Source of the DNA: Lytechinus pictus
Lineage: Eukaryota
Direction of reading: 5' to 3'
NCBI RefSeq assembly: GCF_037042905.1
Contig: NC_087258.1
Coordinates: forward strand, 20,832,001-20,896,000
DNA: 64,000 nt
Made by a program: the position numbers and the translations under genes. Shown in pieces: positions 28,900 through 63,749 of this stretch; the first letter of the stretch is position 1; every line of letters begins with the position of its first letter. Below the pieces are notes generated by a model. The model saw only the letters and a program-made list of their open reading frames with translations, ran no database searches and was not told the origin of the DNA.

Positions 28900-31800
28900 T
28901 CAACTGATGTCCTTAGTTGCAAGAAATGCCCTCAGATCACGAATTTTAGGTGTAATATTGGCACCTACATCACCCATACCATACACGACACTCTGCAAGA
29001 AATGCCAGACTTGGCAACATTGCCGCTGGTAGTCAACATCGAATACAAAAGTACTCTTGAACGCTACATCTACAGCAGCAAGCAGGCTTGCTGTCTCGAT
29101 GGCGTGCCTCTCGACTATCACGTATGTCTGTGCAGGATTGATCTTGCTCCCCCTGGCCATTATGAACGGTTGGGAGCGCTGCTGGCCGTCGATCGACTTC
29201 ATGAATTCCTCAATGTTCACCACCTCCTGTTTTGCAATAGAAACAGAGAAAAAAAATTCCCCCTGTACTTATGATTGTTTCAATTGTTATCTTTTTAGGA
29301 TTACATGCAATTAGTAGGCTCATAGCGAACTTTGCTCGGAAAAAATATGTAGGTTTCCCTGCATACCATGATCTAATGTGATACAATCAATTTTGTTAAT
29401 TTCTTTCAATTTAACTTTTAGTGAAGGGACAATTACATGAGCATCAAATAACATAATTTCAAACTCCTCACGCGGAGCAACATACTACTTTAACTTGATG
29501 AAAGTTCTAAATATACAAACATTTAAAATCCCAATAATAATACTGCTGCTTCTGCCAGATATAACTGTTGTTCTTTGATAATAAAAACAAAATGCCTAAG
29601 TACATTATATGGCTGGCTGCACGAAACCAAAGTTTTCTAAAAAATCATATTGCAGCGATAATATGCATGGCGGTTTCTGTAATCTTCTCTGCCAATACCG
29701 AATCAAAACACTCACATTTGCACCTTTATACAGCAAGAACTAAGATACAGGAAAATTATGTGGGGCTTTACAGTGACTTCACCCTCTATTATACAATTAA
29801 CAGCAAAATACAAGTATTTGAACCCTAACCTTCAGTAATCTTTACTAAGCAAATGTTGATATTAAACGAGACGTTGCACAATCACACACAATTAGGCACA
29901 GAGCATGAACACCACAAAGGATTCTGCAACAAATGACACAGCACAGCAACAAAAAGCCATGCCCATTCTAGTGACATTTGGATTTGACAGTATGGCTTTG
30001 TGTTGTGCTGTGATATTTGTTGAGTCACCCCTTGTGGTGTTCATTGCTAACTAAACTGTGTTTTTTTGTGTGTGCAAAATCTGCAACCTCTTCTATGTTG
30101 ACATGTTATATTAGTAGAGATTACTGAATGACATATAGCTGCATGTGTTTAAATGTGTTTTTAAATTGAGGATTTCTAAACAACTCTGGTAAGTTTCTTT
30201 TGATGCTCATTATACTGCCACACCTGTGAAAGTTCATTAGGTCAATTAGCCTCTCACTTTGACCAAGTGATAACGGGCAAAACAAAATTATGCATGATCA
30301 GACTATTTCTTCACCGTATAAAGTATACGCCTGTTTCCATCTGCAACCTATACAACTTGCATGGTTTGTATTAGAGTATAGCTGTTGATTTAATTTACGA
30401 CATACTTACGGGCTGAACATCTATGAAAGAGTCGAGCGTCTCCTGCACAGTGCACACACCACCCTTAGCTTTTCTTCCACGTAGAATAGCCGGTAGGAGG
30501 ACCAAGGCAAGGTTTGTCTTCTCTTCTGTGAAGGGGAATTTAAAAAAAAAGGAATGTTTCAGTTAGCCAACATTTATAACTGTGTATAGACGGACTGATG
30601 AACATAAATCTGACACTGTAGGGCTTTACAGAATGGCAGCATGCTGGCCAATTACTTGCACAGATGTTACAATCCTTAAAAAAGCCCGCACTGCATGGGA
30701 ACTGGACATCAGCATACCGGACATGAACACTTGTTAGCCTTGATATCTTATCTAAAGAATCACATGAAACATAATTTTGCAAATTCAAAGGCAAATCATG
30801 TGCTACTATTATTATTGACTATAACCCCCAAACATCATGCCTTAGTGTCATGAAACAAGATCAATGCATATAAAATCTCACCAGGGTTCAGCCTCTCTGC
30901 ATCTATTCCATCAAGATGTAGTGCTGCCTTCCACAGTACGGAACGGTTGGCGTATTGGATAATCTGCTCCTTATACTGTGGCCACTTTATGTACAAGCCG
31001 TTCTCTTTGCCTTCATGGAATGTCTTGAAGTCTTGCTCAACCTGTGAGATACAACAATAAAAATTAGTCATCTTTTACTAATTCCTGATGATCAAGGTTT
31101 TTTTTAAAAACATTCCATGGGTAGAAGGCTAAGAGAATATACTTGTTCAAATTTGAGAACAGTAGTTTTTCCACAAGAACTGAACAGATCTTTTTATTTT
31201 CTTCGAGTTAAAAAACTGGCCACCACGCACCATGAAAAAAACAAAGAAAATTAAAGAAATCTCTTACGTCTTGTTTCCAAAACCCTGGTCCGTTTGCTCC
31301 AAAATTTGATCGGAGTAATTTTCACGCCAAAGAGATTCTACCAATAAATTGAGGTGGGTGTGCAAATCAGGCTTTAAAAGTATACAAAGGATGTCAAATT
31401 CCAAGAGTACAGAGGTTTTCTACAAAAATGCATTTGCTTCTCGCCAGACATATGTTATTTAATTTAATTTCATCGCCAAAACTGAGGTAGGGATAAGAAA
31501 CAATTCAGAATTATGTAGCTGTCAGGAACTTAAAAGCACAAACAAAATGTATCTTCTTAAAACAATTGAAAAAGCTCTTTGTATCACTAAACAAAATGAT
31601 GATGAAATTGATTTGTATTATCTTCTGCAGAAAAAAATATTCCATTTAACACAATTCAGTATAATTCTTTAGGGTGCTCTTAGGTAGAATATTAAAACCT
31701 TGTCAAAAAGTCAGGTCTTTACCATTTCTGCTTGCATCATGTGAGGATACTCTGCCAGGATGGTGCTGATATTGTCCCGATGAGCTTTTATCCACTTCTG

Positions 31801-34800
31801 TCGGTGCATTACTGTTTCCTTCATGTAGGCAACAACCTGTTCTCGAGGCTGCTTGTTATGCTTGAGCCATTCAATTTTAGCTGCAGTATCTTTATCAACT
31901 TCTGGAGGCCCCTGATCCTCTGCCGAAGGTTCTGGAGTAAACATGCAATATACAGGAAACATAATTGCATGACATTCTTGATTTTCTTACACAGGCGTCT
32001 GCTACCTTCAGCTGCTTCTTATGACTTTTTAAAGTCATTATAAAATATACTGTCTACCATAAAAAAATAAAAGTATTTGTTTAATAATCTCACAATGCAA
32101 ATATAAATTTCTATAAATAAAAACAATTCCACAGCATTAAGTCAAATGAATTAGTTTTGTTCAACATGTATATATGCATTTAGAAATGGAGAAGAATGTA
32201 TACTGTAACCAAGAATTTATGTGAATTGGCTCTCCTTTGACCTCATAAAAATCAAACCCAAAATCTTATCAGGTGACTGACTGGCGTAACTATTTAAAAG
32301 TACAGACTAGCTGTTATTTAAAGCAAGCAGGAGACAATTAACCAAATGTCTTTAAAATCAACCTATTTTATATTATTGATACCTGATGACTGAGTTTCGG
32401 TTGGCATTGGTTTGACGATCTGCTTTTCTGCTGAGGAAGCAACATTTTCCGCACTTTCAGTCTTCTTCAGGCGACCAGTCCTCTTTCTCAAATACCTTAG
32501 GTGCTCCTCGAGGTATCCCGTTGCTGGACGCCCCTTGGCTCCTTGGCAGTACCAGGCTTCCTTCAAATGGCACAACACGGTATTGTTATTATATATCCTT
32601 CAGGCAAATGACAATCTATTTGGTAGTCACTACATATGATTGACATATAAAGCAATTAAAGGAAACCAAAACCCCAGCCAACAAATTGCTTAAATTCAGA
32701 CAAATTAAAGAATAATATCAATAATATCTTCAAGGAATTGGATGAACTTCAACATGTATGACTTTTCCAAAGTTTTAATCACCATCAATTTGTTTTCTGG
32801 TAGATTGACTAAAGATGTGACCTTTGATGTTTTGGGGATGCTTGCAGAGCTATTCTGACAGATACTGACAGAATTTGTTTATTATTTTCTTTATAATTTT
32901 CTGTGAGCGGGCAGTGCGTCGTGTATACATGTGTAAGTTGGGCATTAGAGAGACATTTTACACTAGCTTAAACAGATTACACTGATTATTAACAAACCCT
33001 TATAATTGCTTGCCAACTAAATACAATATCACTGTATGGATACTTATGAACCAAGCAATTGTCATACTTGCATTCTAAATTAATACTTACATAGCCATAT
33101 GGAGAGTCAGGATCACGCAAGCATGGAAAAGCTGTAATTATGGCACTAGCCATAGCGGCCTTCACTCCAGAAGAAGGTCTGTAAAGCAATAATGTTTTTT
33201 TTTTAAACTGCATTGACTTGCTCATCCAACATCCAGAAACGTACAATTTCACGAAAAGTTGACTTTTACATAACATTAGCATAATCTACCAGAATTATTA
33301 GGGGTCAATGCCTGTGCATGCTCCCTCCCCCCCCCCCCCAATACCCTGAAGTAGGTTTTGTATCGTTTAAACAAAAGCTAACCTAAACTAAGGTTTGTAT
33401 CATGGCGTATAATTGACATGGAACCCTCAGTAAAAAGGATTTTTATTGAGTAAATACATGGCACATTTTGCAATTTCATTAAAAAGGATAACACAAACTT
33501 TCAATATAATTCAAAATATAATGCTAATATATAATTTTAATTTGTGTTGTGGTTATTGCTAAATGAAACTATGAAGACGTGCGTGCAAACAGATGCAAAT
33601 TATTTACACATATAGGCACAGTGTGCGACAATGAATTCAAAATGGCCGCCAACTTGTCTAATGCGACCACCTGTATACAGCGACCCCTTTTCGCTGGTCC
33701 TTTGAGTTGTCGCTATAGACAGGTTTGACTGTAACAAAATTATTATATCCATCGGATAGGGTGTCTTTTCCAATGAAAAACGATACCAAGAATAGTAATT
33801 TTGGTTGTGTAGTTTTTGTTTTAGTGCGCTTTGAGTGACACCATGTCAGGTTCCCTTTTTGGTCATTTTTTTACCAAGTCAGTGTGTAATAAATTGCACT
33901 TACTGCCCATTATAGCGTCGCGAACAACGAGCAATACGCGCTTTTGTTAGTGTGCATTCAGCTGTGTGCCGAGAGAATGGGCACAGTTGCTCGATGATAT
34001 GACAGACAGAAAGTGTGATTTATTAGGCAGATCGAGACTTGGTAAAAAATGGCAAAAATGGGAACCTGACATGGTCTCACTAAAGACGTCCTACAATATT
34101 GTTTTTCATTTGAAAGGACACTCTATCCGGCGGACCCAATCATTTTGTTACTATATTTTGGGAAGTGCCCCGTTCCGTTTTTTGGGGGGCCACCCTGTAT
34201 ATAGGGCATCTACCAATGAAGTTTGGTAATAAACAGATGCACGGTTGGAAGGTTATTCAAATTTTTGTAAGCGTCAAGGACAGACGGACAGACAGACAGA
34301 TGGACGCAATTTGGATCCCTTAGTCTCCCTCCACCTATGGTGGGCTCGACAAAAACAAGGAAAAAGAATGAAACACACAAATAAAATATTTAATACAAAT
34401 ATCATGCGCCTAAAAAGACAAACAGACAATGTATAAAACAGAAAAGGAAGAAAACAATGTATTACTTTTCTCCATGATGCTGCATCACGTACTGCGTGCA
34501 GATGTCCACAAGAATCCTTCTGTTGGGTTTGCTGCAAAACTTGTGCTTGTCAATATCCTTTATAATTCTGGGGCCACCCTTGACAGAAGATAGGATGGGC
34601 CTCAAAAACTGAAAGTAAATGCAAATTAACTAAATTATTTGTTTCTATCCAAAAGTATCAATTTATGTATTATCTTCAAAGATATGCAAGTTAGTTGTGA
34701 TCCCTTGTGATAGCATGAACTGCACACATATGCATACGTCCAAACGAATTCAGATGCATACACTGGCCTGAGCCTAAATAGATCAGGTCTGAATGATTAA

Positions 34801-37800
34801 AAATTATAACAAAGCAACTAGGTAAATATGCATTCCAGTTGAAATAACGTGTAATTCTGGACAAAAACCTACAATGATCTGATATTTTGGCCCTATTCAA
34901 ATATTAGGCAAATTAGGCACAAAATGAGATATGTAACAAGTAAATTATTATAGCAAATAATACTCAACGCACATATGTGACCGTCTTTGTCCCTTTCCGT
35001 TGTGGTGCTATGTGATCATCTGCCTGCCAGTCATGTTGGTCCGAAGAAGTGTCTGCACTGTCTGACAGTTCAAAACCCTCACCCAAACTCACTGTAGATG
35101 CTGGGGATGTAGCAGGTTGTTTGAACTACAAAGGAGTAAGAGAATAGGAGGTGGGGGTCATCAAATATATAATGGATTGTTAGCAAAGAGAATACCAATT
35201 CATCCAGGTTGACATAATATTATCAGATAATATTATCAGATAATGATATACAGTACTGCCGAACATTGTGTGCAAAATTTTCTGCATGATAAGTAAATTT
35301 TGACACCTGAACTTTGCTATAAGTGACTAAAAATTAAAATATGGGCAACGAGACACATAATTGGACCACTGATAAATGTTCAGTTAGCTTCATGCTTGTT
35401 TGAGGTCGTGGAATTACTTCAGTCAACTAATTCTGAGTGGTCTGGGGTAGTACAGTTTTGGTACAGAGGGCGCATGACATTTGTACTCTGTTGTTCGCGC
35501 ACAATTACCCTTTGTGAACTGCTGTACCGTATCGATCATGAATACGCCAAAGCTCGGACAAGCATGACATGTATATGACAAATTTTATTTTCTTTTACAA
35601 AAGTAAAAGAATTTGAAAGTTAAAACACATTTTAGCATACCTACAAAAAGTTGAAACGCACTGCTATGTACCGTGTGTCCTCTTCAAAATGCACTTTATG
35701 AATCTGTGTAGCCGTCAGAGGATGGTAGTCAAATAATTTGCATGGCTTCACAACTGCAATCTTTGACTGCTTGTCGCCATCTTCGTGTACAGCATATGCT
35801 TGAAAGTGCGAACTGAAGTTAACCGTCTCAAACATTTTCAGAACAAGAAGCACCTCACTGTTCATCAGAAGGACATGCAGAACCTTTCCAAATGTAGGTC
35901 CATCTTCTGTCCATTGGGTGATTACACATGTTCCTGCCCTGTACTCATATCCATGTATCACTGCCATTTTTGATGTCGATACAATGATATCCTTGTCACA
36001 TGTTAACACATCAGATATTTTGTTCCCGAGGGCAAGCCATGACAGGTTGATATCCAGCTGCTGGGAAAGTTCCAAGTCTTTGCACTGTATTGACTGTTCT
36101 GACAGGAATGCATAGCACCTTGCCATTTGATGTTTTTCCGAGAGTGTCTTGGCAATATTCTTGAAATTACATGAAGAATTAGCAATCGCCTTGAAGACTT
36201 TATGCTTCCCTTCAAATCGAATTGAAGAGTACTGACACAGAGGACCCAGGGCTCTCAGAACCCTAGGATAATGTGTGAGGAAATGCTGCTTTGGTGTGAG
36301 ATTTCTCTCAGGAAACAATCTCAAGAACTGTCTATGATGCTCACAAATGAGAGCCTTTAGTGCAAATGTGGCTGCTTTGCTTATACTTGGAGCCATCACT
36401 GTCTTCAGTATATTAATGAGCTGGAGATACAATTCCCATTCTTCAGAGTCTTCTGGGACCTTATCCCCTATAATCAAGGGGAGATGATATGCCAAACACA
36501 TCATTTGGGCTGCACTCTGCCCACTGGGGCCACTTGGATTAGTAATTACAGAGAGTTTGACTGGACTTGGACGATTCTTTCTGTTTGCGAATCCATAGTT
36601 GTAGGACTGAATTCTTGCATTCAATTCCTCTAGAGTGAAACATCTTTCTTCAATAAGTCTGCCCAAGACAAGATACATTTCTAGTGGTATTATGGCTTCG
36701 GCAAAGTCATGCATCACATCAACGCAGAGGTTAAGTGTCACATGATAGTTGTCTAAATCATTCAGAATGCTCCTCCTGCTAATACCGGTGTCTGACAATG
36801 GTTTACCAATATCCTCCTCATAGCTTTCTCTTGTCCTTAAGAGATCCTTATCCTCCGCTGTTCGTGACTGAAGCACAGCACGATGCCCCTTGCAAAGTCT
36901 ACAGTAGTAGTTTGCACTGAAACTTGATGTGTATCCAAGCATTGAATTGATTCCCAAATTATCCCCAGTCACTTGAAACAACACTGGTTTCACCTTGACT
37001 GTGCGACCATCATGGTTGATGTGTAATCCATTGTCTGACAAATCCTTCAAATCTGAACATACGGTTTTCAAAATGCTGTCCATTCCATACTTGGTGCAAG
37101 ACTTTGTTGTAGCAAGTGCTACCAACAAAATGTTATCAAGTCTGGCCTGGTACACAGGTGGGAGTGAAAGTACACTCATATAAAATGCACAGATTTTGTG
37201 CTTTCCTCTCTTTGATCCAAGTGGATTGGCAGTTTCGAAGTCGTCAGAGTAGAGTAACAACGGAATAACAAGTGACTCTTCATGTGAGTATTTCTCTTTA
37301 AAGTGATCTCCATCACGATATGATTCCAAAACCTGATCTCCAGACTCTTGGGCAGAATGAATAGCTTCCAGAACACCTGGCTGCTCCAAATGTTGTTTGA
37401 GTGACTGTGAGACTGGAATGTATTGAAATGTTTCTTCGTGACGAACTTGCAGAGATGTCCCACTAGACGAATCGATAGTTGCTTTGAAATAATGCCCAAG
37501 GATTTTCTCTTCAGGAGAAATGAAAGCACCACATTTTTTGAAATATGCTCTCTTCTGATGTTCAGTTTTCAAATCACTGAAAGGATTTGATGTTTCATTC
37601 AACAGTTGCTCCAATTCTACCTTTGCGGCTTCATCTGTAACATTTTCTGCAACTTTGGTAATCTTTTCTTGTACATGATCTACAAAATTATCAAAAATTT
37701 CCTCCACATTTTCGAGAACTTCTTCCACAAATGACGTAGGCACACGAGATGAATTTCTTAATTTTGCTATCAACAGAGCAGCTTCGTTGGCATGTGGTGT

Positions 37801-39621
37801 TTTTTCCCCCTTATCTCCTCCTTCAATCACAATCTCTTCGGTGTCCTGTTCTTCACTGTGATGCGTGGCTTCTTCTTCATAGAGTGTTTGATAATCTACA
37901 TTTGTTTGTCCATCATTATTTCTTTCTCGTGAGTGCTTAGATATCAAATGTTTTTTGAACCCACCTAATGTGTTGAAATGGCTTCTACACTGCTTTTGAA
38001 AACATGTTACATGCACTCTGCGCCCATAGCGAATTTGATGGGAATGTTTAAAATGAAAGAACAGGGATTGGATTCCTCCAAAAGATTTCAAGCATTTAAA
38101 GCATTTAAAAGACATACGTGTACCTCTTCTCTCCATCCTTTGGTAAATTTGATTCTTTTTCCAATCTTTGGAATTAGCTCCTTGATGCTATCTTCATTGA
38201 GGTCTGGTAGAAGATGGATGTCAATATCATTGTCTGGAGGCAAGAAAATGAGAAAAAAAGAAAACAAAAAGAAGTTGTATGAGAGGGGAAATATATAAAT
38301 GTCTAAATTGATAAGCTAGTCTTACTTACCAATAACTTATGTGAAATATTTATCATCTGATTAATTATTAAAGAGTGATATTCAAATTTCTGTGAACAAT
38401 CAAAAGTATTCCAGCTATACAGCGTGTCCCATTTTACCTTTGACCAAAGCATATCATTGAGGTCAGTATAGGGCATCTACCAATCAAGTTTGGTTACAAA
38501 CAGATGCAGGGTTGGAAAGTTATTGACCCTCTTACCCCCAAAACTTCACATTGACCCTCATTTGACCTTTGACCTACATATGTGACCTTTGATCCCAGCA
38601 TATCATAAAGGCCAATATAGGGCATCTACCAATCATGTTTGGTTACAAACAGATCCACGGTTGGAAAGTTATTGACCCTAATAGACTCTTACCCAAAAAC
38701 TTCACTTTGACCTTTGACCCCAGCATATACCTAGTGCATGGTCATGCTGCATGGTATGGGCTAGACCGACGGTTGTTCCGCTGAGATTATACATCTGGCT
38801 CCTCTGTAGTCCTGTACATAGACTGAAGTACGGCATATGGGGTAGTGTGTGGAACTGGAAGGAATGGATCGGTTCGGCCGGACCGCGAGACGAATGAAGA
38901 TGCGAGTTTTTTAACTCTTTACGTCTTCATATATCCACTTTGGCTGCAATATTACATTCCATCTTATTTTCAAAAATTTCGCTATTGCAATTAAATTTAA
39001 AGAATTTTATGTAGGCCTAGGGCCTAAGTAAGAAATAGGTCTAAACTGTTAGGCCTAACTTGTTAGATTCTATACAAAATTCTTATGTCTGATTTATGGA
39101 TCAGACAATTAACTTAACTTTTGTTAGATCTAACGTTAGGCCTAACCTTAAATAAAGAAAAACGGGGGAGAACGTTTTTGTACCAAAAGTGGTACAAAAT
39201 CGGCTCAATCTCACCCCGTTGTGCGAGCCGGACGGGTTACCGTCTGTGTATGGCGAATGATGTTGTCAAATGACAAAGAATGACCCATACCAGACAAAGA
39301 TGAAAGAATGACCCATACCAGACCAGACTGTTATTTCTGTCTAACGTTAGGTATAGCCTAGGCTTGCCCCGGGAACCTCGACACGACGTCTTTAGTGTTC
39401 GGGCTGCCGCAGTAAAGCCTAGGCTATAGTACTAGTAGGCATGCATACTAGCGCATAGGCCTAGGCCTACTGTTAAAAAGTGATAGCGAATAATAGCTAT
39501 GACTGACCTTTGAACGTGTTCAACAGCTCAGGAACGCCCCATTTTTTTGTAACAAGGCCTCTAGGTCCAGGGCAGGATTGTCCATGTCCACATCATCGTC
39601 CAGATCATATTCAAGGTCCAT
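28900..39621 (-). CDS. Transposon-borne 10-exon SAM-domain (SAMD3-like) accessory protein, ~534 aa; 1-nt frameshift in exon 1 as assembled
   Basis: Exons with GT-AG boundaries and consistent phases: 39621-39508, 38233-38118 (alternative end 38124), 35125-34973, 34608-34466, 33178-33091, 32560-32383, 31931-31723, 31041-30882, 30525-30410, 29226-28900. SAM-like WGVPELLNTFK-DNDIDIHLLPDLNEDSIKELIPKIGKRIKF; AIITAFPCLRDP..YGYEAW; C-terminal AVDVAFKSTFVFDVDY..VWHFLQSVVY. Confidence 0.8.
33630..34200. mobile_element. Tc1/mariner-like MITE remnants nested in an intron of the SAM gene
   Basis: Ends ...GACAGGTTTGACTG-TA (~33733) and ...GGCCACCCTG-TA (~34199); internal inverted repeat 33840-33880 vs 34035-34075. 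Confidence 0.5.
35641..38136 (-). CDS. EnSpm/CMC-family DDE transposase (831 aa, or 824 aa from ATG 38115), intronless, N-terminal C2H2 zinc fingers
   Basis: C..C..H..H fingers; LYSDDFETANPLGSKRGKHK, VTGDNLG..LG..FS...CRLC, DVMHD..E, TPKQHFLTHYP and RFEGKHK motifs; uninterrupted ORF lying between matching TIRs. Confidence 0.92.
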   Translation of the reverse strand: MERRGTRMSFKCFKCLKSFGGIQSLFFHFKHSHQIRYGRRVHVTCFQKQCRSHFNTLGGFKKHLISKHSRERNNDGQTNVDYQTLYEEEATHHSEEQDTEEIVIEGGDKGEKTPHANEAALLIAKLRNSSRVPTSFVEEVLENVEEIFDNFVDHVQEKITKVAENVTDEAAKVELEQLLNETSNPFSDLKTEHQKRAYFKKCGAFISPEEKILGHYFKATIDSSSGTSLQVRHEETFQYIPVSQSLKQHLEQPGVLEAIHSAQESGDQVLESYRDGDHFKEKYSHEESLVIPLLLYSDDFETANPLGSKRGKHKICAFYMSVLSLPPVYQARLDNILLVALATTKSCTKYGMDSILKTVCSDLKDLSDNGLHINHDGRTVKVKPVLFQVTGDNLGINSMLGYTSSFSANYYCRLCKGHRAVLQSRTAEDKDLLRTRESYEEDIGKPLSDTGISRRSILNDLDNYHVTLNLCVDVMHDFAEAIIPLEMYLVLGRLIEERCFTLEELNARIQSYNYGFANRKNRPSPVKLSVITNPSGPSGQSAAQMMCLAYHLPLIIGDKVPEDSEEWELYLQLINILKTVMAPSISKAATFALKALICEHHRQFLRLFPERNLTPKQHFLTHYPRVLRALGPLCQYSSIRFEGKHKVFKAIANSSCNFKNIAKTLSEKHQMARCYAFLSEQSIQCKDLELSQQLDINLSWLALGNKISDVLTCDKDIIVSTSKMAVIHGYEYRAGTCVITQWTEDGPTFGKVLHVLLMNSEVLLVLKMFETVNFSSHFQAYAVHEDGDKQSKIAVVKPCKLFDYHPLTATQIHKVHFEEDTRYIAVRFNFL

Positions 39622-41143
39622 GATATCATATGTAATCAGTTTCTAACTTCCAGCGGATGATTATGATAATGATGATCCCCTTTTAATCTGGCCGACTCGA
39701 TACGTACCGGGTACGTGCATGCGAGTGATATTGTGTGCGACATCGCCTCGTGCATATATATGCCATCATATGGGCGTAACATGCCCAGTAATGGTGAAAT
39801 AAATGCTCATGATGGGCGAAACGTGGTTTCAGCTGGCCATCGTGCACCAGTATTGCAACGGTACGTAGCTAGCTAGCGCTAGCGCGCGCAACGTGACATA
39901 ACTGTGTTCGCGCCGATATGCTGTTGTTGTTATTTGTTTTTAATTACCGGTATTTGCATTCAGTAGTGAATTTTTGAGCCATAAGTATTTTGCGCCCCTT
40001 TGCTAATTGCGCCAAAATTATGCCTATACTGTACATACTGGGTAAACACCAATGGATGAAATTGGGCATTATACCTACAAGTACAAGTACACCTGGTAAA
40101 ACTTCCCCAACACTGGGCGACATAAGTGGTTCCATTGTGCAGCCCGCACCCGTCGACGGGAGGGGGGGGGGGGGGTCTGAATTTCTTTTTTTGTGGGATG
40201 TGTTTTGCAAGAATGCCTATAGCAAAGTAGGGGGCCGAGGATAATCATAATGAGTCGGCAATCTATATGCATGCAGTGACTATAAAACAATACCATATTC
40301 AGGCTATTAACATTATAGTTACCCAGAATCAGGTCGATATTATATATAGGCATGGTTTTTGACACAATGTTGGATTTATGCTTAGGCCTAGCTACTTTCA
40401 AAAGTTGGGAACGAATATACCCAATGTGGTAAGCCTTTAGATATGCCCAATTTTCATTTACCCAGTGCTTAATTGTTATAAACTCATTACGTGTGGGCAT
40501 GCCTTACGTTTTGTTATGTTGGGTATATAGTTACCCACATAGCTGTAGGTTAATAATGGCCAATTTGTTTTTACCCGTTGGTATTTGGTGTTTACCCAGT
40601 ATATAGGCATTATGTTTTGTTTCCATGATGAGTAAATGCACTGTAGTTGGGGAAGTTTGACCCAGTTGTAGGTATATTTGTATTTTCCCAGTGCTGATTG
40701 CCCAGTATGTAGGCATTTTTCTTTTGCCCTATGTAGGGTAAATGCGTGTAGTAAAAAGGCTGGGAAAATTTTACCCAACCTTTGCCCAATTTCCATTTAC
40801 CCAGTGGAGTTTACCCAATATTTTTAAGAGTGTAGAAGCAATTGCAACGTTGATTTGTACCAACTTTATAGCATGAAAATATTGAAAATATGTTATCAAT
40901 AGGCTGACTGATTTAAATCTGTAAAATTAATATTTGTAAAAACTTAAATCCGTTTAACATTATCAATACATTTTAATGTTAGATCATTTCATTCGCTATA
41001 ACGTAGACTTCCATGTGTAGTAGAGAAGCTCTATCAAAACAAAAGAGAACAAATGAAAACAAATGGATTTACGATTGCTTTTATGAGAGATGAAAAGTAG
41101 CTTCTTTATAAAAGTGAACCCAGCAAACGAGGGGAAGTCTACC

Positions 41144-52017: not shown

Positions 52018-53310
52018 AACAAAGCTAGAAAAACATTGTGTTAAATTTGCTAATGACGGCTTACGGTACATGGGTATGTGATATAAGCGTCATAGCGACG
52101 AATGTGATGGTGATTATGATAGACAATGTGATGATGGTGATGATGATGATAATGATGATGATGATGATGGTATAGGTAATGATGATGATGGCATTGNNNN
52201 NNNNNNNNNNNNNNNNNNNNNNNNNNNNNNNNNNNNNNNNNNNNNNNNNNNNNNNNNNNNNNNNNNNNNNNNNNNNNNNNNNNNNNNNNNNNNNNNNNNN
52301 NNNNNNNNNNNNNNNNNNNNNNNNNNNNNNNNNNNNNNNNNNNNNNNNNNNNNNNNNNNNNNNNNNNNNNNNNNNNNNNNNNNNNNNNNNNNNNNNNNNN
52401 NNNNNNNNNNNNNNNNNNNNNNNNNNNNNNNNNNNNNNNNNNNNNNNNNNNNNNNNNNNNNNNNNNNNNNNNNNNNNNNNNNNNNNNNNNNNNATGATTA
52501 CTATGATAGATGATGATGATGGTGGTGATGAAGATTATTCAAATGATGGTAGCCGTGGTGGTGATAGGGGTGGTGGGGATGGTAACGACGGTGACTATGA
52601 GGATGATGGTGGTGATGATGATGGTGGTGGTGGTGATGATAGGTGTTTTGGTAAGAAGCTGAATATATGAGAAAATTTAATCCTTCAGAAAGGCTAAATT
52701 GGAGAGAAGATTAAACTTTGGAAAAAAGTGATTTGTTTTGGATTAAACGCCATATAATTATTATAACGTTTGCTTTAATGATCTACCTCAAAGATACCAT
52801 ATCAAATTTGTCAACACGTCAATTTATAGCAGTGCGCTATCTTCAGCATCAGATTTTTCACGTTCATGAGTTTACGGAGGTGCTGCAGTTCGTCACCTTT
52901 TATGTCCAAATTTCAGCAATGTTAATTTGTGTCCCGTCATAGAAGTAAGTTTCGTAGATTAATCAGATAATAGGGGAGATAATGTGTTGATTATATAATT
53001 ATGACAAGAAACTCAAAGAGAGTTATTGACGAAAAACAGAAGTAAAAATTCATTATAAATATACACGTGAAAAGAGGTTGAAGTTAGAAGACAATTTTTT
53101 GGCTCAAAAGGCTCGTGTGAAATCTAATCACAATTGTCTTAAATGCATATAACTGAAATTTGTGTTATAAAGTAAAAGTTTCAAGATGTCTAAAATCTGA
53201 ATATTTAATTAATGAAAAGCTTCAGTTGAAAGCTTTGTTTAGTTTTTTGGAAGCAACTGGTTATGTTGGAAAATGTGAATATAAACATTTCCAGGAAGTT
53301 TAGTTCGGTT

Positions 53311-54008
53311 CACTCATCATGGGATCAATGCATCTCGCGTGCGAAGGATTCATATGCACATGGTGCACGCGAATTTTTCACACCCTTTTTACTAAAATAA
53401 CTAAGCCATTCCTTTTAAAATAATGTTTCTAATTGTGCTATGACACTTACCGAACCATATGGATCGTTTCTTGTCTTCTCTTTGGTGTGTTTTTAAGAAA
53501 AAAAATTCATTTTCTCGTGATCTTCACGTAGATACCGCAGGGTAATTGTGGTTGTAAACTTTTGCTTAAAGAGGGCGCGCGATATTATTCACAAGATGTT
53601 TGTTTACGGTTCTGCAGCTTGTACTGCTAGCTGCATTTTAGACGCTCAGCATTATTTTCCTCTTTCTGTTTTTTTTTTGCTGTCAAGCGGTATTTTCTAT
53701 TGTAGCGCCATCAGCGATGATGAAATGTAAAGAGTCGCCTTGAAATGAAGAAAAATTATGTCACATTAATTCGTTAGTTTGTTTCCTATTTTTTTTCACT
53801 TTTTTCTTCTTCCTCATCTATGATCAAAGGTGAATACCTTTTTTTGATATAGATGTTCTAAAAGCTGGACATTTTAAATATTTTGTTCAAGTAAATAAAT
53901 CAACAGGATAGTAATCAAAATGCGATAGAGCTGCCCGAGCTGAAGATTCTGATACAAGGACTTGAAAATAAAACATTCTGAGCACTTTTTATAACCATGA
54001 TGAGGAGA

Positions 54009-54062
<54 letters not shown>

Positions 54063-56412
54063 AAGTTATACGTGTACTACAGCTTTGGCAACTCTTTTAN
54101 NNNNNNNNNNNNNNNNNNNNNNNNNNNNNNNNNNNNNNNNNNNNNNNNNNNNNNNNNNNNNNNNNNNNNNNNNNNNNNNNNNNNNNNNNNNNNNNNNNNN
54201 NNNNNNNNNNNNNNNNNNNNNNNNNNNNNNNNNNNNNNNNNNNNNNNNNNNNNNNNNNNNNNNNNAAAATACGTTTTGGGGACTGTTAAATAAGAATTCA
54301 TGAGTGGGATAGGTAACTATCTATTCTATTCTTGTTCGTTTTCTATTATTATTTGTGTGTTGTGTTTATTTTTCTTGAAGCACCAAAAGGTGGACATGTC
54401 CGCTAAGATATATTAACGAAGTCACCATTATCATCACAAGCTAACGGATCAATTAAAATGTGAGCGTGAAACGTATATAAGCTTCTTTTTTTCTTAATTC
54501 AGTCTTAACGATACTTTTTCATCATATTTTAAAGGTGAATCTCATGATTCAAAATGATAAATGCTTGTCGCACGGGCAGAAATAGCGGGACCAATAGTTA
54601 TTTTCAATATTCCGAACTGCATTCTGGACGTTGTATAAGCGCCTTTGTATAACAATTAAAAGGGTAGGTCTATTTACCTTACAAATTATGCGAGCGCTGA
54701 ACTTTTGGACATTTAAACCTCAACAAATGGACATTTTTTAAATATGAACAACATCATAAATGTCACTTACAAAAATGATGCCAGCGCGAAGCTCGCGCTT
54801 AGAGTTTTTGATATTGATGACAGGACTGTATCTAAATGAAAAATAATGCGAGGGCATTTGCGCTTAAGATTTAAATTTGGGATTTGAAAAGTCCGACAGA
54901 TTACCTATACTTTTAAAAGAGGAATGACCTCCAGAATTCAAGCGCGAAGCGCCAGTAGATTTATGTTGAAGTTTAGACCTAGAACAGGGACGTTGAACCT
55001 TTATAATCATGAAAAAGATGGTATTTTTATAAATAAAACATGGGAGTCTAATTTTGTTTTAGTGTTAATATTCAGATCTTCAAACTTGACATTTTCCTAT
55101 CCCCTTCATTATCCCCTCTCCTTCTCCCTTTCCCCATTTTCGTTCTCCCTTCTTTTCTTCTCTCCCTTTCCCTTCCCTTTTTCGCTTTTCCTTTCCCTTC
55201 TTTTCTTTCCTTTCTCCCTCCCCTACTCTTTTCTCGCTCTTTCCATTTTTCTTTCCCTCTCCCTTCCCCTCTTCCTTTCTTTTGTTTTCTTTCTATTTTA
55301 TGGTCTCCTTTTCCCTCTCTCTCCTCTACTTTTCCCCCTCCCCTGATCTGTCTTTTATTGTCTCTCCTTTCCTTTCCCGCCCCCTCCATTCCCTTTCTCG
55401 CTTTTTCCTTTCCCTTCTTTTCTTTCCTTTCTCCCTCCCCTATATACTCTTTTCTCGCTCTTTCCATTTTTCTTTCCCTCTCCCTTCCCCTCTTCCTTTC
55501 CTTTGTTTTCTTTCTATTTTATGGTATCCTTTTCCCTCTCTCTCCTCTACCTTTCCCCCTCCCTTTTCCTTTCCCTTTCCCTCTCCTTTTTTGTGCAAAC
55601 ATTAACACGAACATCTTGCTTCCTACACACACACACAAACGCCCGCAATCTAACACACGTAATGCGAAACAATCGGGACATTATCATTTTGTTCATACAT
55701 ATATATGTATATTTTCTCAATGAACATTTTCATCTATTTAAAGCTTTGAAAATTATCAAACAATGATTCCACAGGCGAAATCTCAATGATCATTAGAAAG
55801 GTACTTTACCCATTTTCATTTTATGTCATTGTGATTATTCCATACTAAGGCAACATATTTTGGATATAAAAATACGTGAAGGATATATGTTCCTCTTCTG
55901 TTTTATACTTTAACAGAAAACATTTTGTTCAACCAAATTATGATTTGTATTTCCAAGTTCCATGTAATATTTTCATCGGAAAATCTCTTAAAGGTCAAGT
56001 GCACCCCAGAAAAAATTGTTTGAATAAATAGAGAACTATGTTGATTTTTGGTACAATTTCCTATTATGCGCCGACGACTTGAATCGAGAATGTTCGATAG
56101 GAAAATTTCGCATTTCGATTGTTGTTTGCGTAATTTCCACCGCAGTACGAAGGATGACTAAGGACGGACCGAGCGAAGTATCCTGGTTGAGATTTGGAGG
56201 TAAGCGATAAAAACACTTTAATAAATAATTTATGATTGCTTTTTGCAATAAACTTGATCATACGATCAAGATAAACATAGTGGACAAATATTGAAAGGTT
56301 TAGCGTAGTTTAGTCCCTCACATTCGTGTGATGGATGAAAACGTCAAAATGCACTATGAAATCACATGTGTTGTGCGAGGTTAGTATACTAACCTCGCAT
56401 GTTGTGTGAGTG
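53311..56412. mobile_element. Unclassified non-autonomous element: 6-bp termini, 9-bp TSD, subterminal hairpin
   Basis: CACTCA...TGAGTG; TSD AGTTCGGTT (53302-10, 56413-21); empty site in the 3' LTR (~62986); palindrome TGCGAGGTTAGTATACTAACCTCGCA at 56374-56399; interior contains (TA)n, a gap and CT-rich repeats. Confidence 0.9.
55095..55590. repeat. Polypyrimidine (CT-rich) low-complexity tract with an internal ~220-bp duplication
   Basis: Seen directly in the sequence. Confidence 0.9.
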
Positions 56413-57224
56413 AGTTCGGTTTGGATTCATAATCTAAGCAAAAGCATGAAAATACAAGACTTCTTTTTTTGTGAGAATGAAGAGACAAAATATCTGGGTT
56501 ATTTTCATATTACAAAGATTATATTGTATTTTTAAAGCATATCTATGCTTAAGACAAGTTGTTCATTGTGAGGTGAAAGTGCATAAATATAGATCTATAC
56601 AAAAGGATACAAAAACATGTTCATGAGTCTGATACATGAACATTTGGTGAATTCATGAAGTGTATTTTGAAGAGGTAGAAATAAGTTTCTGGCAAAACTA
56701 GTTTAGTTCATGAATAATTGCATATACATTTAATTTAGAGAAAAGCAGTTTTAAAAGCTATTAGGGATTTGTTTCGGCATAGTTGGACTCAACTATGCGT
56801 TGATGGCGCCCTGCCAAAATTGGGCATTGATTTTTTATGCCTTTTATATAAGGAGTGATTTTGATAGAAAATAATATTGTCTGCTACATTCAGACTTTCA
56901 GTTGGTTTATATTAGTCTTAATCCATGCTTTTACTATAAACAATGAAAGTCAATCTTGGTCAGAATATTAAGTAATACTTTGATGGACAAATGTAAATGC
57001 ATCAAGACCAGGTTACACAAGATATTCATATTTAAGTGCATGTTTTAATTCAGGATGAGATGACTCAAAATATGCTGTTTTGTTTTATCATTTCAGATTG
57101 AATAAAATCTACAAATCAACACTGTAGAAATATCTCAATTCCATGGTTCACATCTCGGCTTGTTCTGTACTATCCATAAATTCAATTTCTTCGCATACTC
57201 CGGGAATAGTACAAGAAGGACAAG

Positions 57225-60200
57225 ATGGCTGAAAGAGCAGGCGAACTGAAGGTGAAGCGGAGGTCGGCAAAGGGGAAGTTCACAAGGACTTTGAATCAAG
57301 TTCAGGCCCTGATGGACAGTGAAAGATCCAGCAAAGAGGTTGATGAGGGTTTTCAGGAATGTCAGAAATGCTACAAAGATCTGGAAGAGAAGCATGACGT
57401 ATACTGTGAGCTTCTTGATGATTCGGCATATGAATCAGAGCAGGCATGGATAGAAGATTGCATGAATAACTTCATGCAAGTGAAAGCAAAGGTTTGTGAC
57501 TACCTCGAAAACAATAGCATTGGAAATATCAGCTCTGGAGGAGTAAGAAATGCAACTCAATGTAAGGTGCAGGTTGAAAAACCTAAGTTACCCAGGTTTT
57601 CAGGAGATATTAGAGAATATCAAACTTTTAAGTCCGACTTCAAGCATCTCATTGAAACCAGATATGCCGAAAGGGATTGCATAACAATTATGCGTACTAG
57701 CCTGCAAGGGAAACCACTGGAAATAATTCAAGGGATAGGAACCGACTATCAAGCAGCGTGGGAGCAACTTGATATCATGTACGGTGATCCGAGGAATCTA
57801 GCCGATGCTATCATATCTGATATCACAAAGTTCAAGAACTTGAAGGACGGTGAGGATGCAAGGTTCATCGAGTTTGCCGGATTAGTTAGGAGGAGTTACA
57901 ACACTCTGAAACAGATAAATAAGGAAGAGGATATGAACAATTCTCATATGTTGGCGTTGATAGAACGGAAGCTTACAAATGAAGATCGTAAGATTTGGTT
58001 ACGTCTGCAGAGGTCACCCACTTTAAAGGGCTTGATGGACTGGATGAGCGAGGAACTACAGACTCGCATTCGGGCGACTGCATCCATTCGAGAAGGAAGG
58101 TCAGATAACAGGACCAAGCAAGGTGCATCCATACACCAAGTTATGAACCAAGACGAAGGCAATGATGTGGTTCGTAAGCAGGACTTTAAGTGTTGGCACT
58201 GTAAATCCAATGATCACTGGATTGATAAGTGTCAAATGATTATCAGAATGAGCCAACCAGAAAGGTACGACTTGATGAAGGCGAACAGAGCGTGCTTTAG
58301 CTGTCTGAAGCGGGCCAGCAAGGAACACCGCATGACCACATGTAGACGAAGAAGGAAGTGCGACCAATGCCCGTCATATCATCATCCTTTGCTACATTCA
58401 ACAATAGAAAAAAGGGAGTCTACAGTGGACGTGGCAAGTATCGGATCAAGTGAGACTCTGTTACCAATACTGTCAGTCAAGGTTCGAGGTACGAAGGGAG
58501 CGGTCATTGGTAACTGTTTGTTGGACTCTGGGTCTCAAGTGACACTCATCAGGACGGAGATTGCAAAGACACTTAATCTCGAGGGTGATCCAATCCAAGT
58601 CGTGATCACAAAAGTTGGCGGAGACAGAGAGACTGCTGATTCCAAGTTATATCGGGTTAAGCTTGAGTCTTTGGATACCCATAAAGTCATTGTGGTACAA
58701 GCTATCGGACTAGATGTCATCAACGATAACATCACAGGTGTTAATGTTAGAGAGTTAGCAAGGATTTTCCATCTTGACAAACTCTACAGAGGTTCTGGAC
58801 CAATTGATCTACTCATCGGTGCCGACTATGCAAAACTTCATCTTGGGAATGGAAAGCCAAGAGAGAGAGGACATCTAGTTGCTAAGCGAACGCCACTAGG
58901 CTGGGTGGTGTTTGGTGGTAAACCAGGCCAGAAGGGTGGAAACGTACTCAATGTACAAGTAATCAGGAATCCCATTGATCTGCAGGATTTTTGGACGACA
59001 GAGTCTATGGGAGTGGCCTGTCCAGATAAAGAGGTAGATGAACAGAAGTTTATCATCAAGGCTTGTCAGAAGAAAGGACGACAGTGGCTGGTTCCATATC
59101 CATGGCAGAGAAACCCAAAGGAACTGCCAGACAACAAGGTACTGGTGGAAAAAATGCTCTGTGCTACAGAGAAAAGGTTGCTGAAGGATGCCGAGCATGC
59201 CAAAGCCTATGATAATCAAATCAAAGAAATGGTACAGATGGGTTTCGCAAGGAAAATGACAAATGAGGAAATGGAGTCGTATGAGGGCCCTGTGCATTAT
59301 ATTCCTCATCATGCAGTGTTGCGACCGGAAAAGAAGAGCACACCGATAAGAATTGTCTTCAATTCCTCTTCAGTGTATGCTGGCAAGTGTCTCAACGACT
59401 TCTGGATGAAAGGCCCTGACCTCTTAAATAACTTGTTTGGAGTCATCCTACGTTTCCGGGAGAGGTCAGTAGCAGTTTGTGCAGATATCTCAAAAATGTA
59501 CCACAGGGTGCTGATACCCGAGTCTGATCAGCACGTACACAGGTTTTTATGGAGAGATTTGCAAGTGAACAGAAAGCCTGATACGTATGTGATGCAAGTC
59601 GTGACGTTTGGAGATAAGCCGGCTCCAGCAATGGCGCAGACAGCACTGAGACTCACTGCAGAAGAAGGCCGTGCTCAGTCTCCAGAGGCTGCAGATGTAT
59701 TGAAAAGAGATACATACATGGATGACATCTGCACATCTACAGATACGATAGAGCAAGCTAAAGCCTTAACCAAGGACATTGACATGATTCTTGCTGATGG
59801 TGGGTTTAAGGTGAAAGGCTGGACTTCCAACATACAGCTAAAAGGTCCAGAGGCAAACGAAATGGAGAAAACTATGATGGAAAGTCTAGCAGAGGAGAAG
59901 GTGCTAGGAGTCTTCTGGGATAGAGAGAAGGATGAGTTCTCTTACAGAGTGAAAGTTGACAAGTTCATAGATAAGAGACTAACCAAGAGAATCATCCTCA
60001 GTCATGTTGCCCGAATCTTCGATCCGATTGGCTATACAGCACCATTTGTCATCCGGGCAAAAATTGGACTACAGCAACTATGGGAAAATGGCTATGACTG
60101 GGATGCAGTTCTTCCAGATGAATGTCAAATGGAATGGAAAAGATTCTTTCAAGAAATGGAAGAGCTCAAGGAGGTAACATTTGAAAGATGTCTGACTCCG

Positions 60201-61050
60201 AAAGAGGCAGTGGGTAAGCCGCTGCTCTGTATCTTCAGTGATGCTTCGATGCATGCCTTTGGAGCGTGTGCATACCTGAGGTGGGAAATGGATGGTGGAG
60301 GCTACATGACTAGATTTGTGGCAGCAAAATCACGAGTGGCACCACTCAAGCCACTAACAGTTCCACGCCTTGAGCTTCAGGCTGCAGTTCTTGCGAGTAG
60401 GTTATTTAAGACGATATTGGAGGAGCTGAGGATTGAAATTGAGGATGTCATTTTAATGACAGACAGTACGATCGCCCTCTCGTGGATTAGAGGTAGGGCG
60501 AAAACCTTCAAGACGTTTGTTACAACAAAAGTGGGAGAAATCCAGACCAGCACAGACCCCTGCAAATGGAGACACATCTCTGGAGAAAGCAACATAGCAG
60601 ATGTGTTATCAAGAGGACTGAAGGCAAGTGAGCTGGTGGGGTCATGGCAACGGGGTCCAGACTTTCTTCAAAAGTCAGCATCTGATTGGTCCGACGAAGT
60701 TAAGGTTTGTGAGGACCTTCCTGATGTTGAGAAGGAGAGGCGTAACGAGAAGACAGTTCTAAATGTGTCTCAGAGTCATCATCTGATTCATTACGAGAGG
60801 TTCTCTAACTGGAGGAAACTGGTCAGAGTAGCAGCATTGGTGATAAAGTTTGTAAAGAAACTCAAGGCCAGACGGCAGAATCAGGAAAAAGAGACCAGTA
60901 CAAAGATTACGCCCACAGAACTAGATGACGGAGAAAAGTACATCATCAGAGATGTACAAAATGGCATGGAGTCTCGGATCAAGAAAGGAGAGCTGAAGTC
61001 TTTTTTGAGTCCATTCATTGATGACTACGGTATCATACGGGTTGGAGGCA
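57225..61050 (+). CDS. BEL/Pao Gag-Pol polyprotein, part 1 (Gag with triple Cys-His boxes, protease, RT, RNase H)
   Basis: KLPRFSGD; CWHC..H..C, CFSC..H..C, CDQC..HHPLLH; LLDSGSQ; YIPHHAV, GPDLLN, ADISKMY, YMDD; FDPIG, FSDAS, PRLEL, TDS, NIAD. Confidence 0.93.
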
Positions 61051-62217
61051 TTCGAGCAGAAGCATCCTGCCCTGCTTCCATATGGACATCATGTTTCAAG
61101 ACTGATTACTCGTCATGTACATGAGACGAGTCACAGTGGAGTAGCTGCAACCATGGCAAAGATAAGACTGAAATACTGGATTCTTCATGGTCACAAACTT
61201 GCCAAGACAGTTAAGTATAGATGTACCAGGTGCAGAGTGTTTCAGCACAAGACAGAGACCCAACAGATGTCAGACCTACCAAAAGAGAGATTGGCCCCAA
61301 GTACACCACCATTCCACTTCACTTCATGTGATTATTTCGGGCCGCTAACGGTGAAAGTGGGACGTAACAAGACATCAAAATATTATGGTGTGATATTCAC
61401 CTGCTTGAACACTCGTGCTGTTCATCTGGAACTGGCAGTGGATTGTAGTACGATGGAATTCATACAGGTGCTAAGACGTTTCTTCTCTATCAGAGGACAA
61501 CCAACGATGATCATGAGCGACAATGGTACCCAGTTCATAGGTGCAGAACGAGAACTAAGGAAGATGACGGAAGGAATGTCTGACAACGAGCTGAAGGACT
61601 TTTGTGCAGAGAGAGGCACTACATGGAAGTTTGTAACTCCAGGGGCACCACATCAAAACGGGTGCGCCGAATCTTTGGTCAAGAGCTGCAAGCATGCATT
61701 GAAAAGGGCGATAGGTGATCAAGTGTTGTCGCCTTTTGAACTGTATACATGCTTAGTGGAGGTATCGAATCTTGTCAACCAAAGACCTATCGGCCGACTT
61801 CCAACTGATCCAGACGATGGCAGCTATATCTCACCGAACGACATGCTTCTAGGACGAGCTTCGGGGAGCGTAGCGCAAGGCCCATTCTTGAAGACGCGAA
61901 ATCCAAGACACAGAGTGGAACTGGTTCAGCGCATTGTAGATTCTTTCTGGCAACGGTGGACAAGGGATGTTTTGCCACTGTTAGCTCCAAGAAGGAAGTG
62001 GAATGTTCATCGACGCAATGTCTGCATTGGGGATGTAGTAATGCTCGCCGACATGAACTCTATACGCAGCAAGTGGACAATCGCTCGCGTGATTGAAGTT
62101 TACCCAGGTGACGACGGTAAAGTGCGGAATGTGAAAGTAAAGACTATGAACTCTGAATATCGTCGCCCAGTAACCAAGTTAGCAGTAATCTACCCTGTTG
62201 AGGGATACGAAGATTAG
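61051..62217 (+). CDS. BEL/Pao integrase, separated from the polyprotein by a frameshifting deletion
   Basis: HHCC (HVHETSH..CTRC), DYFGP, SDNGTQF, PHQNGCAESLVK, N.RP, YRRPVTKL. Confidence 0.9.
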   Translation, partial: FEQKHPALLPYGHHVSRLITRHVHETSHSGVAATMAKIRLKYWILHGHKLAKTVKYRCTRCRVFQHKTETQQMSDLPKERLAPSTPPFHFTSCDYFGPLTVKVGRNKTSKYYGVIFTCLNTRAVHLELAVDCSTMEFIQVLRRFFSIRGQPTMIMSDNGTQFIGAERELRKMTEGMSDNELKDFCAERGTTWKFVTPGAPHQNGCAESLVKSCKHALKRAIGDQVLSPFELYTCLVEVSNLVNQRPIGRLPTDPDDGSYISPNDMLLGRASGSVAQGPFLKTRNPRHRVELVQRIVDSFWQRWTRDVLPLLAPRRKWNVHRRNVCIGDVVMLADMNSIRSKWTIARVIEVYPGDDGKVRNVKVKTMNSEYRRPVTKLAVIYPVEGYED

Positions 62218-62327
62218 TACATAAGGACTGTAAGTTTTGAAACAATTTATCTGTAGCGCGAATTTGGCTGTTTTTTTTTTTTGTTTCGATTTGTAATGAG
62301 GACAACCCCCTCATTGGGCGGGGAGGA

Positions 62328-63749
62328 TGTTTTGGTAAGAAGCTGAATATATGAGAAAATTTAATCCTTCAGAAAGGCTAAATTGGAGAGAAGATTAAAC
62401 TTTGGAAAAAAGTGATTTGTTTTGGATTAAACGCCATATAATTATTATAACGTTTGCTTTAATGATCTACCTCAAAGATACCATATCAAATTTGTCAACA
62501 CGTCAATTTATAGCAGTGCGCTATCTTCAGCATCAGATTTTTCACGTTCATGAGTTTACGGAGGTGCTGCAGTTCGTCACCTTTTATGTCCAAATTTCAG
62601 CAATGTTAATTTGTGTCCCGTCATAGAAGTAAGTTTCGTAGATTAATCAGATAATAGGGGAGATAATGTGTTGATTATATAATTATGACAAGAAACTCAA
62701 AGAGAGTTATTGACGAAAAACAGAAGTAAAAATTCATTATAAATATACACGTGAAAAGAGGTTGAAGTTAGAAGACAATTTTTTGGCTCAAAAGGCTCGT
62801 GTGAAATCTAATCACAATTGTCTTAAATGCATATAACTGAAATTTGTGTTATAAAGTAAAAGTTTCAAGATGTCTAAAATCTGAATATTTAATTAATGAA
62901 AAGCTTCAGTTGAAAGCTTTGTTTAGTTTTTTGGAAGCAACTGGTTATGTTGGAAAATGTGAATATAAACATTTCCAGGAAGTTTAGTTCGGTTTGGATT
63001 CATAATCTAAGCAAAAGCATGAAAATACAAGACTTCTTTTTTTGTGAGAATGAAGAGACAAAATATCTGGGTTATTTTCATATTACAAAGATTATATTGT
63101 ATTTTTAAAGCATATCTATGCTTAAGACAAGTTGTTCATTGTGAGGTGAAAGTGCATAAATATAGATCTATACAAAAGGATACAAAAACATGTTCATGAG
63201 TCTGATACATGAACATTTGGTGAATTCATGAAGTGTATTTTGAAGAGGTAGAAATAAGTTTCTGGCAAAACTAGTTTAGTTCATGAATAATTGCATATAC
63301 ATTTAATTTAGAGAAAAGCAGTTTTAAAAGCTATTAGGGATTTGTTTCGGCATAGTTGGACTCAACTATGCGTTGATGGCGCCCTGCCAAAATTGGGCAT
63401 TGATTTTTTATGCCTTTTATATAAGGAGTGATTTTGATAGAAAATAATATTGTCTGCTACATTCAGACTTTCAGTTGGTTTATATTAGTCTTAATCCATG
63501 CTTTTACTATAAACAATGAAAGTCAATCTTGGTCAGAATATTAAGTAATACTTTGATGGACAAATGTAAATGCATCAAGACCAGGTTACACAAGATATTC
63601 ATATTTAAGTGCATGTTTTAATTCAGGATGAGATGACTCAAAATATGCTGTTTTGTTTTATCATTTCAGATTGAATAAAATCTACAAATCAACACTGTAG
63701 AAATATCTCAATTCCATGGTTCACATCTCGGCTTGTTCTGTACTATCCA
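62328..63749 (+). repeat. 3' LTR (1422 bp)
   Basis: TG..CA, follows the PPT, contains TATA-like TTTATATAAG and AATAAA. Confidence 0.96.

Follow-up and report, generated by a model that had tools for sequence, protein, structure and literature searches.

Introduction

Mutator-like elements (MULEs) duplicate 8-11 bp of their target, typically 9 bp, and include groups that have dispensed with terminal inverted repeats (TIRs), such as Curupira of the Schistosoma flatworm, which combines a 9-bp duplication with no TIR, and VANDAL of Arabidopsis (PMC6446971). Here we analyze a 64,000-nucleotide stretch of the genome of Lytechinus pictus (hereafter the window; assembly GCF_037042905.1, contig NC_087258.1, forward-strand positions 20,832,001 to 20,896,000), in which a 3102-bp insertion at window positions 53311-56412 has landed in a long terminal repeat (LTR) of a BEL/Pao element. 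We posit that this insertion is, with high probability, a member of a non-autonomous family, designated family A, that belongs to a recently active group of cut-and-paste-type DNA transposons. The element is a non-autonomous DNA transposon and thus of an ordinary kind; its form is unusual, in that it has almost no TIR, bears a palindrome at just one of its ends, targets related elements at their tips, and is both very young and abundant.

In terms of described systems, the closest parallels are the non-TIR MULEs of the Curupira and VANDAL type, which likewise show a 9-bp duplication, absent or vestigial TIRs in spite of their mobility, and families of non-autonomous derivatives (PMC6446971). 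They differ from the present element in that CACTC..GAGTG tips combined with a palindrome at a single end have not been described for them (PMC6446971); moreover, no MULE transposase is linked to family A, and a sister family, family C, makes mostly 8-bp duplications. Measured against MULEs in general, the 9-bp duplication is present and the long TIRs are not, the inverted repeat being only 6 bp, which is compatible only with the non-TIR groups. Tips of the form CAC..GTG, which are found in family A and its sister families B and C, are also reminiscent of the CMCT assemblage (CACTA, Mirage, Chapaev and Transib); however, the duplications of the latter are 2-5 bp as opposed to 8-9 bp here (PMC12730594).

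Results

An insertion with exact ends in a young BEL/Pao element

The insertion and its host comprise the following features, with positions given in the window:

52644-57176, + strand: 5' LTR of the host BEL/Pao element, split by the insertion (from its match to the 3' LTR)
53302-53310, + strand: left target-site duplication, AGTTCGGTT, which the empty site at 62986-62994 has once
53311-56412, + strand: family-A non-autonomous DNA transposon, 3102 bp including an N gap, collinear with the gap-free copy L061
54100-54265, no strand: gap in the assembly (166 N), adjoining a (TA)n run at about 54011-54057
56413-56421, + strand: right target-site duplication, AGTTCGGTT (from the comparison of filled and empty sites)
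57225-62217, + strand: BEL/Pao gag-pol frames, with domain matches to DUF1759, an aspartyl protease, RVT_1, Peptidase_A17, an integrase and DUF5641
62328-63749, + strand: intact 3' LTR of 1422 bp, in which 62986-62994 is the empty site (from the LTR comparison)

The intact 3' LTR preserves the site as it was prior to the insertion. When extended base by base, the two parts of the interrupted 5' LTR (52644-53310 and 56422-57176) together equal the 3' LTR at 62328-63749 with no mismatch over 1422 bp, and the 9-mer AGTTCGGTT occurs twice at the filled site and in a single copy at the empty one. A shift of either boundary by one base destroys this match, and the ends of the insertion are therefore exact. 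Thus, comparison of the filled and empty sites defines each boundary to single-base precision and establishes a target duplication of 9 bp, bearing out the first-pass annotation of this DNA, which had read exact boundaries and a 9-bp duplication from the empty site in the 3' LTR.

The host was identified as a BEL/Pao element by a strong match to Peptidase_A17 (1e-51) along with DUF1759, RVT_1, rve and DUF5641, all of which lie between direct LTRs with the termini TGT..CCA. As the two LTRs are identical, the host must be very young and the insertion in its 5' LTR younger still, in keeping with the order of events that had been proposed from the sequence. The host (52644-63749) also retains long open gag-pol frames, and the letters flanking it suggest a short duplication, GATAGG.

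The run of N at 54100-54265 is the only one within the element. Element positions 7-789 align to positions 7-801 of L061 and positions 956-3102 to its positions 970-3116, at 99.86% identity, with 168 bases between the aligned blocks in L061 as against the 166 N of the window copy. This collinearity of the gap flanks implies that both sides belong to one continuous copy and that the estimated gap size is reasonable. Since the gap lies within non-coding DNA, it is of no concern for any reading frame.

A young, abundant and non-coding family

Pattern matches with up to 2 mismatches across the whole 811.7-Mb assembly recovered 145 left and 207 right ends of family A, and none with the reversed control patterns. 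The size of the family is put at about 150-200 near-identical copies. Consistently, the first and last 300 bp of the element each match dozens of near-identical places in the genome. The surplus of right over left ends stems at least in part from mutated left ends, such as that of the window copy, and from local duplications. Where both flanks were available, a perfect 9-bp duplication was found around 27 of 28 copies with intact ends; the duplication of the remaining one, L014/L044, can be read as either 8 or 9 bp, and a further copy, L017, has a damaged left tip. The genome search with the element's ends that had been suggested at first pass thus returns further copies with paired ends and target duplications.

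Thirteen full copies show substitution identities of 98.6-99.9% (median 99.3%), and the window copy is 99.86% identical to both L061 and L066, in agreement with the earlier view of it as very young. Copies of about 90-94% identity are also present, indicating a more extended period of activity. Family members are typically about 3.1 kb long; across a range of 2.0-3.9 kb they vary through deletions in the interior, the length of microsatellites and small insertions nested within them, and the deletion derivatives keep both ends. Even copies with larger nested inserts, in which 5.1-9.3 kb separate the two ends, still carry a matching 9-bp duplication.

Family A has no open reading frames (ORFs) other than low-complexity frames that run through one block of the element:

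55080-55590, + strand: low-complexity block, rich in CT, that contains a 221-bp internal duplication (55202-55342, 55423-55563) and gives rise to long spurious frames

The element has no match in Rfam. Comparisons of translated family A, family C and an associated element with TAGAC tips (see below) to one MULE and one CMC transposase from this genome detected no similarity. The family-A element is therefore non-coding and non-autonomous.

Unlike ends and a conserved one-sided palindrome

The two ends of the window copy comprise the following features:

53311-53316, + strand: left tip CACTCA, followed by a copy-specific extra TCA; the family-A reading is CACTCATGGG (from the comparison of copies)
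53335-53372, + strand: weak 8-bp inverted repeat TCGCGTGC..GCACGCGA (arms at 53335-53342 and 53365-53372), which folds like shuffled sequence
56374-56399, + strand: palindrome of the hairpin end, perfect over 26 bp and separated from the right tip by 13 nt (from the fold test and copy comparison)
56400-56412, + strand: 13-nt tail ending in the right tip TGAGTG at 56407-56412 (from the right ends read)

The inverted repeat between the CACTCA and TGAGTG tips is confined to 6 bp, just as the first-pass description of near-absent TIRs had it. The extra TCA close to the left tip of the window copy causes its first six bases to be clipped in similarity searches. Folded as single-stranded DNA, the 26-bp palindrome, which had been noted at 13 nt from one end, reaches -13.3 kcal/mol as opposed to -4.0 kcal/mol for shuffles (z -5.8), with none of 200 shuffles equalling it, and it is unchanged in all 28 family-A right ends read. 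A separate inverted repeat had been called near the other end: the pair TCGCGTGC/GCACGCGA is indeed present; however, its fold is matched by 37 of 200 shuffles (z -0.96) and is not beyond chance.

A common layout recurs in families A, B and C, namely CACTC, then 8-9 nt, and then a palindrome with a GAGGT..ACCTC core. It lies at the right end in family B (window 18789-18848, and in the flanks of L036, L037 and L051) and at the left end in family C (window 17778-17837; z -4.6). The opposite ends of families A and C have no such palindrome, implying that the ends are intrinsically asymmetric. Between families, the sequence of the palindrome arms is kept and the loop is variable. This constancy of the arms in the face of differing loops suggests that the palindrome is bound through its sequence, possibly by a dimer, and is not recognized merely for its potential to form a hairpin.

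Sister families and stacked tips

Related ends elsewhere in the window belong to the following features:

17612-17678, + strand: two stacked orphan hairpin-end tips, both ending GTGTGAGTG
17778-18655, + strand: family-C copy of 878 bp, CACTCC..AGAGTG, with its hairpin end on the left, flanked by the 9-bp duplication GGTGTAACC
18817-18880, + strand: family-B hairpin-end tip present twice in tandem, in 32-nt units

Candidate copies of family C, which is non-coding, number at least 927, and the best 40 are 98-100% identical over the full query. The duplication around its window copy is 9 bp and those around seven other copies are 8 bp; in five of the latter seven the 8 bp follow a G, which is also the element's final base. 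Family C accordingly yields duplications of 8-9 bp. With families A and C together exceeding 1000 members, and with copies that are 99-100% identical, a transposase must be active now or have been so very recently.

The stacking of tips is not limited to family B or the orphan pair, as two family-A tips are stacked 39 bp apart at C7:1866895-1866964 (C numbers designate contigs and L numbers loci). In such stacks the inner hairpin-end unit can be without one palindrome arm. The tandem hairpin-end units recall foldback elements such as Drosophila FB, which makes a 9-bp duplication and whose arms are built of repeated terminal units in the foldback/MULE-type manner; unlike these, family A has no long arms in inverted orientation, and no stack of more than two units was observed.

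A further element of 5.1 kb with TAGAC..GTCTA tips (TAGACAGG..GGTCTA) is nested in the family-A copy L074 (L074:89-5229), where the 9-bp duplication ATGCACATG surrounds it. Within this element are fragments of a RecQ-like helicase, as well as 15-bp minisatellites that lie in a large internal palindrome.

Target choice

In the 22 empty sites that were reconstructed, the GC content of the duplicated 9-mer is 58% as compared to 43% in the 20-nt flanks, and the 9-mer begins with G in 13 of them. The same sites display mirror-image base biases at positions -5 to -3 and +11 to +13, which we take as the mark of a symmetric transpososome.

A second bias concerns the tips of the related elements themselves. 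Of roughly 40 independent insertions, about 8-9 are found no more than 35 nt away from the tip of an element of family A, B or C or of the TAGAC type, and several fall inside the last 9 bases of the resident element; with tips of this kind numbering a few thousand in the 812 Mb, a rough estimate puts the expectation from chance well below 1%. The copies lying 0-35 nt from family-B, -C or TAGAC tips are L003/L064, L005/L065, L007, L020, L028, L036, L040, L051 and L074. The L065 insertion falls among the first six bases of a family-C tip, at a place where two such tips face each other at a distance of 8 nt.

Candidate autonomous copies and transposases

The first-pass annotation had looked to long copies with ORFs as a route to the transposase. 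We surveyed all long left-right end pairs on contigs C1-C9, for which the lists of ends are complete with respect to exact matches, and found no such copy among them. The pairs at L073 (9.3 kb), L074 (6.8 kb), L078 (8.4 kb) and L079 (5.1 kb) proved to be family-A copies with nested inserts and no ORF. The seemingly inverted pair of right ends at L076 is a full family-A copy beside a partial one, again with no ORF. The three successive right ends at L077 (C8:15974800-15984000) result from a 4084-bp segmental tandem duplication, also without an ORF, whose duplicated segment holds the 3' part of an older family-A copy of about 91% identity.

Domain scans with Pfam models recovered several transposase lineages. 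The locus L075 has an intact 894-aa frame with a MULE domain (L075:3947-6628; C4:3098337), with a second copy of 723 aa at C5:27312124; neither a TIR nor a duplication is visible within 10 kb of the L075 frame, which may accordingly be either a domesticated MULE or a TIR-less one. Another MULE frame, of 838 aa, is located at C18:17.463 Mb. The KDZ domain was found at one weak locus (C1:37.908-37.912 Mb; 35 and 30 bits), which has an in-frame stop and is far from the listed family ends. There are 53 IS1595/Merlin-type and 41 P-type (RNase H) matches genome-wide, none of which is near the listed family ends. Among these are three Merlin-type frames of 338 aa with identical scores (C1:35222911, C2:58561285 and C3:77396110) and two P-type frames of 959 aa, again with identical scores (C4:26170661 and C21:9248440), suggesting that there are other young DNA transposon families in this genome.

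Other features of the window

A 14-kb CMC-type transposon occupies window positions 26746-40832. It has 25-bp TIRs that start with CACTC, is flanked by TA, and contains an 831-aa frame with a weak, below-cut-off match to Transposase_21 (19.5 bits). As a partner of the family-A element it can be ruled out, being flanked by TA only and having TIRs of 25 bp. Two repeat arrays were also observed: a tandem array of a 39-bp unit at 22124-23800, with about 44 registered copies of 98-99% identity, and a minisatellite with 51-, 60- and 111-bp units at 15400-16650, directly after a TRIM-like frame that stops at 15352.

Discussion

A proposed transposition mechanism

A fixed-length duplication, exact ends shared across copies, deletion derivatives that keep their ends and nested composites that moved as units together point to a transposon mobilized in trans, probably by a DDE-type enzyme. 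To our knowledge, a constant 9-bp duplication is not produced by mechanisms of the rolling-circle, retroelement or recombinase type. We propose that a transposase encoded elsewhere in the genome recognizes the two unlike ends, which share the CACTC..GAGTG tips, with the one-sided palindrome (core GAGGT..ACCTC, 13-14 nt from the tip) likely serving as its main binding site. Following excision, the target would be attacked by two active sites at positions offset by 9 bases, and the 9-bp duplication would be left once the staggered ends are repaired. Integration favors GC-rich, weakly palindromic 9-mers and very often occurs a few bases from the tips of related elements. This last preference could be explained if transposase on a resident end also captures target DNA or recruits incoming elements, thereby directing insertion to the tips.

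Affinities of the family and the competing explanations

As to the superfamily, the first-pass annotation had raised a non-TIR MULE, a Zisupton/KDZ-type element and an undescribed family. A TIR-less Mutator-like element offers the best fit and is the likeliest single assignment, albeit one that we rate at somewhat below an even chance; the remaining probability is spread over Merlin-, P/hAT- and KDZ-like elements and an undescribed lineage. Several observations weigh against a cut-and-paste element of this kind. No instance of the predicted excision, i.e. the 'cut' step, was observed. The duplications of family C are mostly 8 bp, which could reflect different enzymes in the two families or a Merlin-, hAT- or P-like affinity of the group. 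Tips of the form CAC..GTG are usual in CMC and Transib elements and not in MULEs. Neither an autonomous copy nor a transposase tied to family A was recovered from the long pairs on C1-C9 and the Pfam scans. Only 17 loci with a MULE domain (PF10551) are present genome-wide, none of them beside the listed family ends. The intact MULE-domain locus at L075 is unrelated: it does not resemble family A in sequence, is not bounded by CACTC ends and shows no convincing duplication. As the defining transposase is not shown, we do not file family A as a MULE.

The family could alternatively have been moved by an enzyme of the Merlin, P or hAT lineage with atypical ends or an atypical duplication length, which we consider unlikely. 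P elements share with family A the CA..TG tips, the GC-rich targets and insertion near other elements of their own kind; however, the duplications of both P and hAT elements are 7-8 bp and not 9 bp, and the YARNG motif of hAT tips does not fit CACTC. The genome contains intact, multi-copy transposase frames of the Merlin and P types, none of which lies beside the listed family ends. Merlin duplications are 8 or 9 bp and would suit families C and A respectively; against this, Merlin TIRs are at least 24 bp and start with GG, as opposed to the 6-bp TIR starting with CA seen here (PMC8101967). In hAT elements, too, the duplication length depends on the lineage, within a range of 5-8 bp (PMC12730594).

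We assign a comparably small chance to the possibility that families A, B and C constitute an undescribed eukaryotic DDE lineage, currently active in a laboratory sea urchin and characterized by CACTC..GAGTG tips, the lack of TIRs, one palindrome-bearing end, 8-9-bp duplications and end-targeted integration, with a transposase that is new or only remotely related to known ones. Were this the case, tip-aimed integration may seed tandem stacks and satellites. Such a lineage would account for the fact that no known superfamily shows all the features tested and for the three or more young families that have a common layout. On the other hand, the missing match reflects searches limited to part of the genome and conducted without comparison to Repbase or Dfam, and non-TIR MULEs already cover most of the features.

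Distinctly less probable is mobilization by a transposase of the KDZ group (Zisupton, Dileera and Kyakuja). Kyakuja resembles family A in having CA..TG tips without TIRs and a long duplication; however, this duplication is 7 bp rather than 9 bp, and the element was described in fungi (PMC12730594). The 8 bp of Zisupton compare well with the 8 bp seen in family C, whereas the 9 bp of family A fall outside the 7-8 bp reported for the group (PMC12730594). The genome does contain one locus with a KDZ domain; however, this one weak match, interrupted by an in-frame stop, could hardly have given rise to over 1000 young copies.

The layout of the ends had also prompted comparison with Helitrons, which make no duplication, have TC..CTRR tips, insert at A^T and carry a hairpin about 10-12 nt from the 3' end. 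A Helitron- or Helentron-like rolling-circle element, whose Rep/helicase would nick the ends and whose 3' hairpin would act as terminator, is highly improbable: the ends are indeed asymmetric, with the palindrome 13 nt from one tip and its terminus found in tandem stacks, and right ends outnumber left ends (207 to 145), but the empty site proves a true 9-bp duplication, which 27 of 28 copies share, the tips read CACTCA..TGAGTG, insertion is into GC-rich 9-mers rather than at A^T or T^T, and the right-end surplus arises at least partly from mutated left ends and local duplications. Thus, of the Helitron-like layout only the hairpin distance stands, with duplication, tip letters and target all differing, and the first-pass interpretation, namely that the element is unclassified, recently mobile and distinct from Helitrons, is partly supported, being right in outline.

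Significance

If the enzyme behind family A is that of a MULE, the family would represent a large and active TIR-less MULE group in a deuterostome; if it is not, it may define a new lineage. The near-absence of a TIR, the single conserved palindrome and the strong habit of landing at tips together make it a good case for studying how a transposase recognizes two unlike ends and how transposon termini become stacked tandem repeats. Finally, genetic lines of Lytechinus pictus are under construction, and with its current or very recent activity the family is likely a source of spontaneous mutations in this species and possibly a tool for transgenesis.

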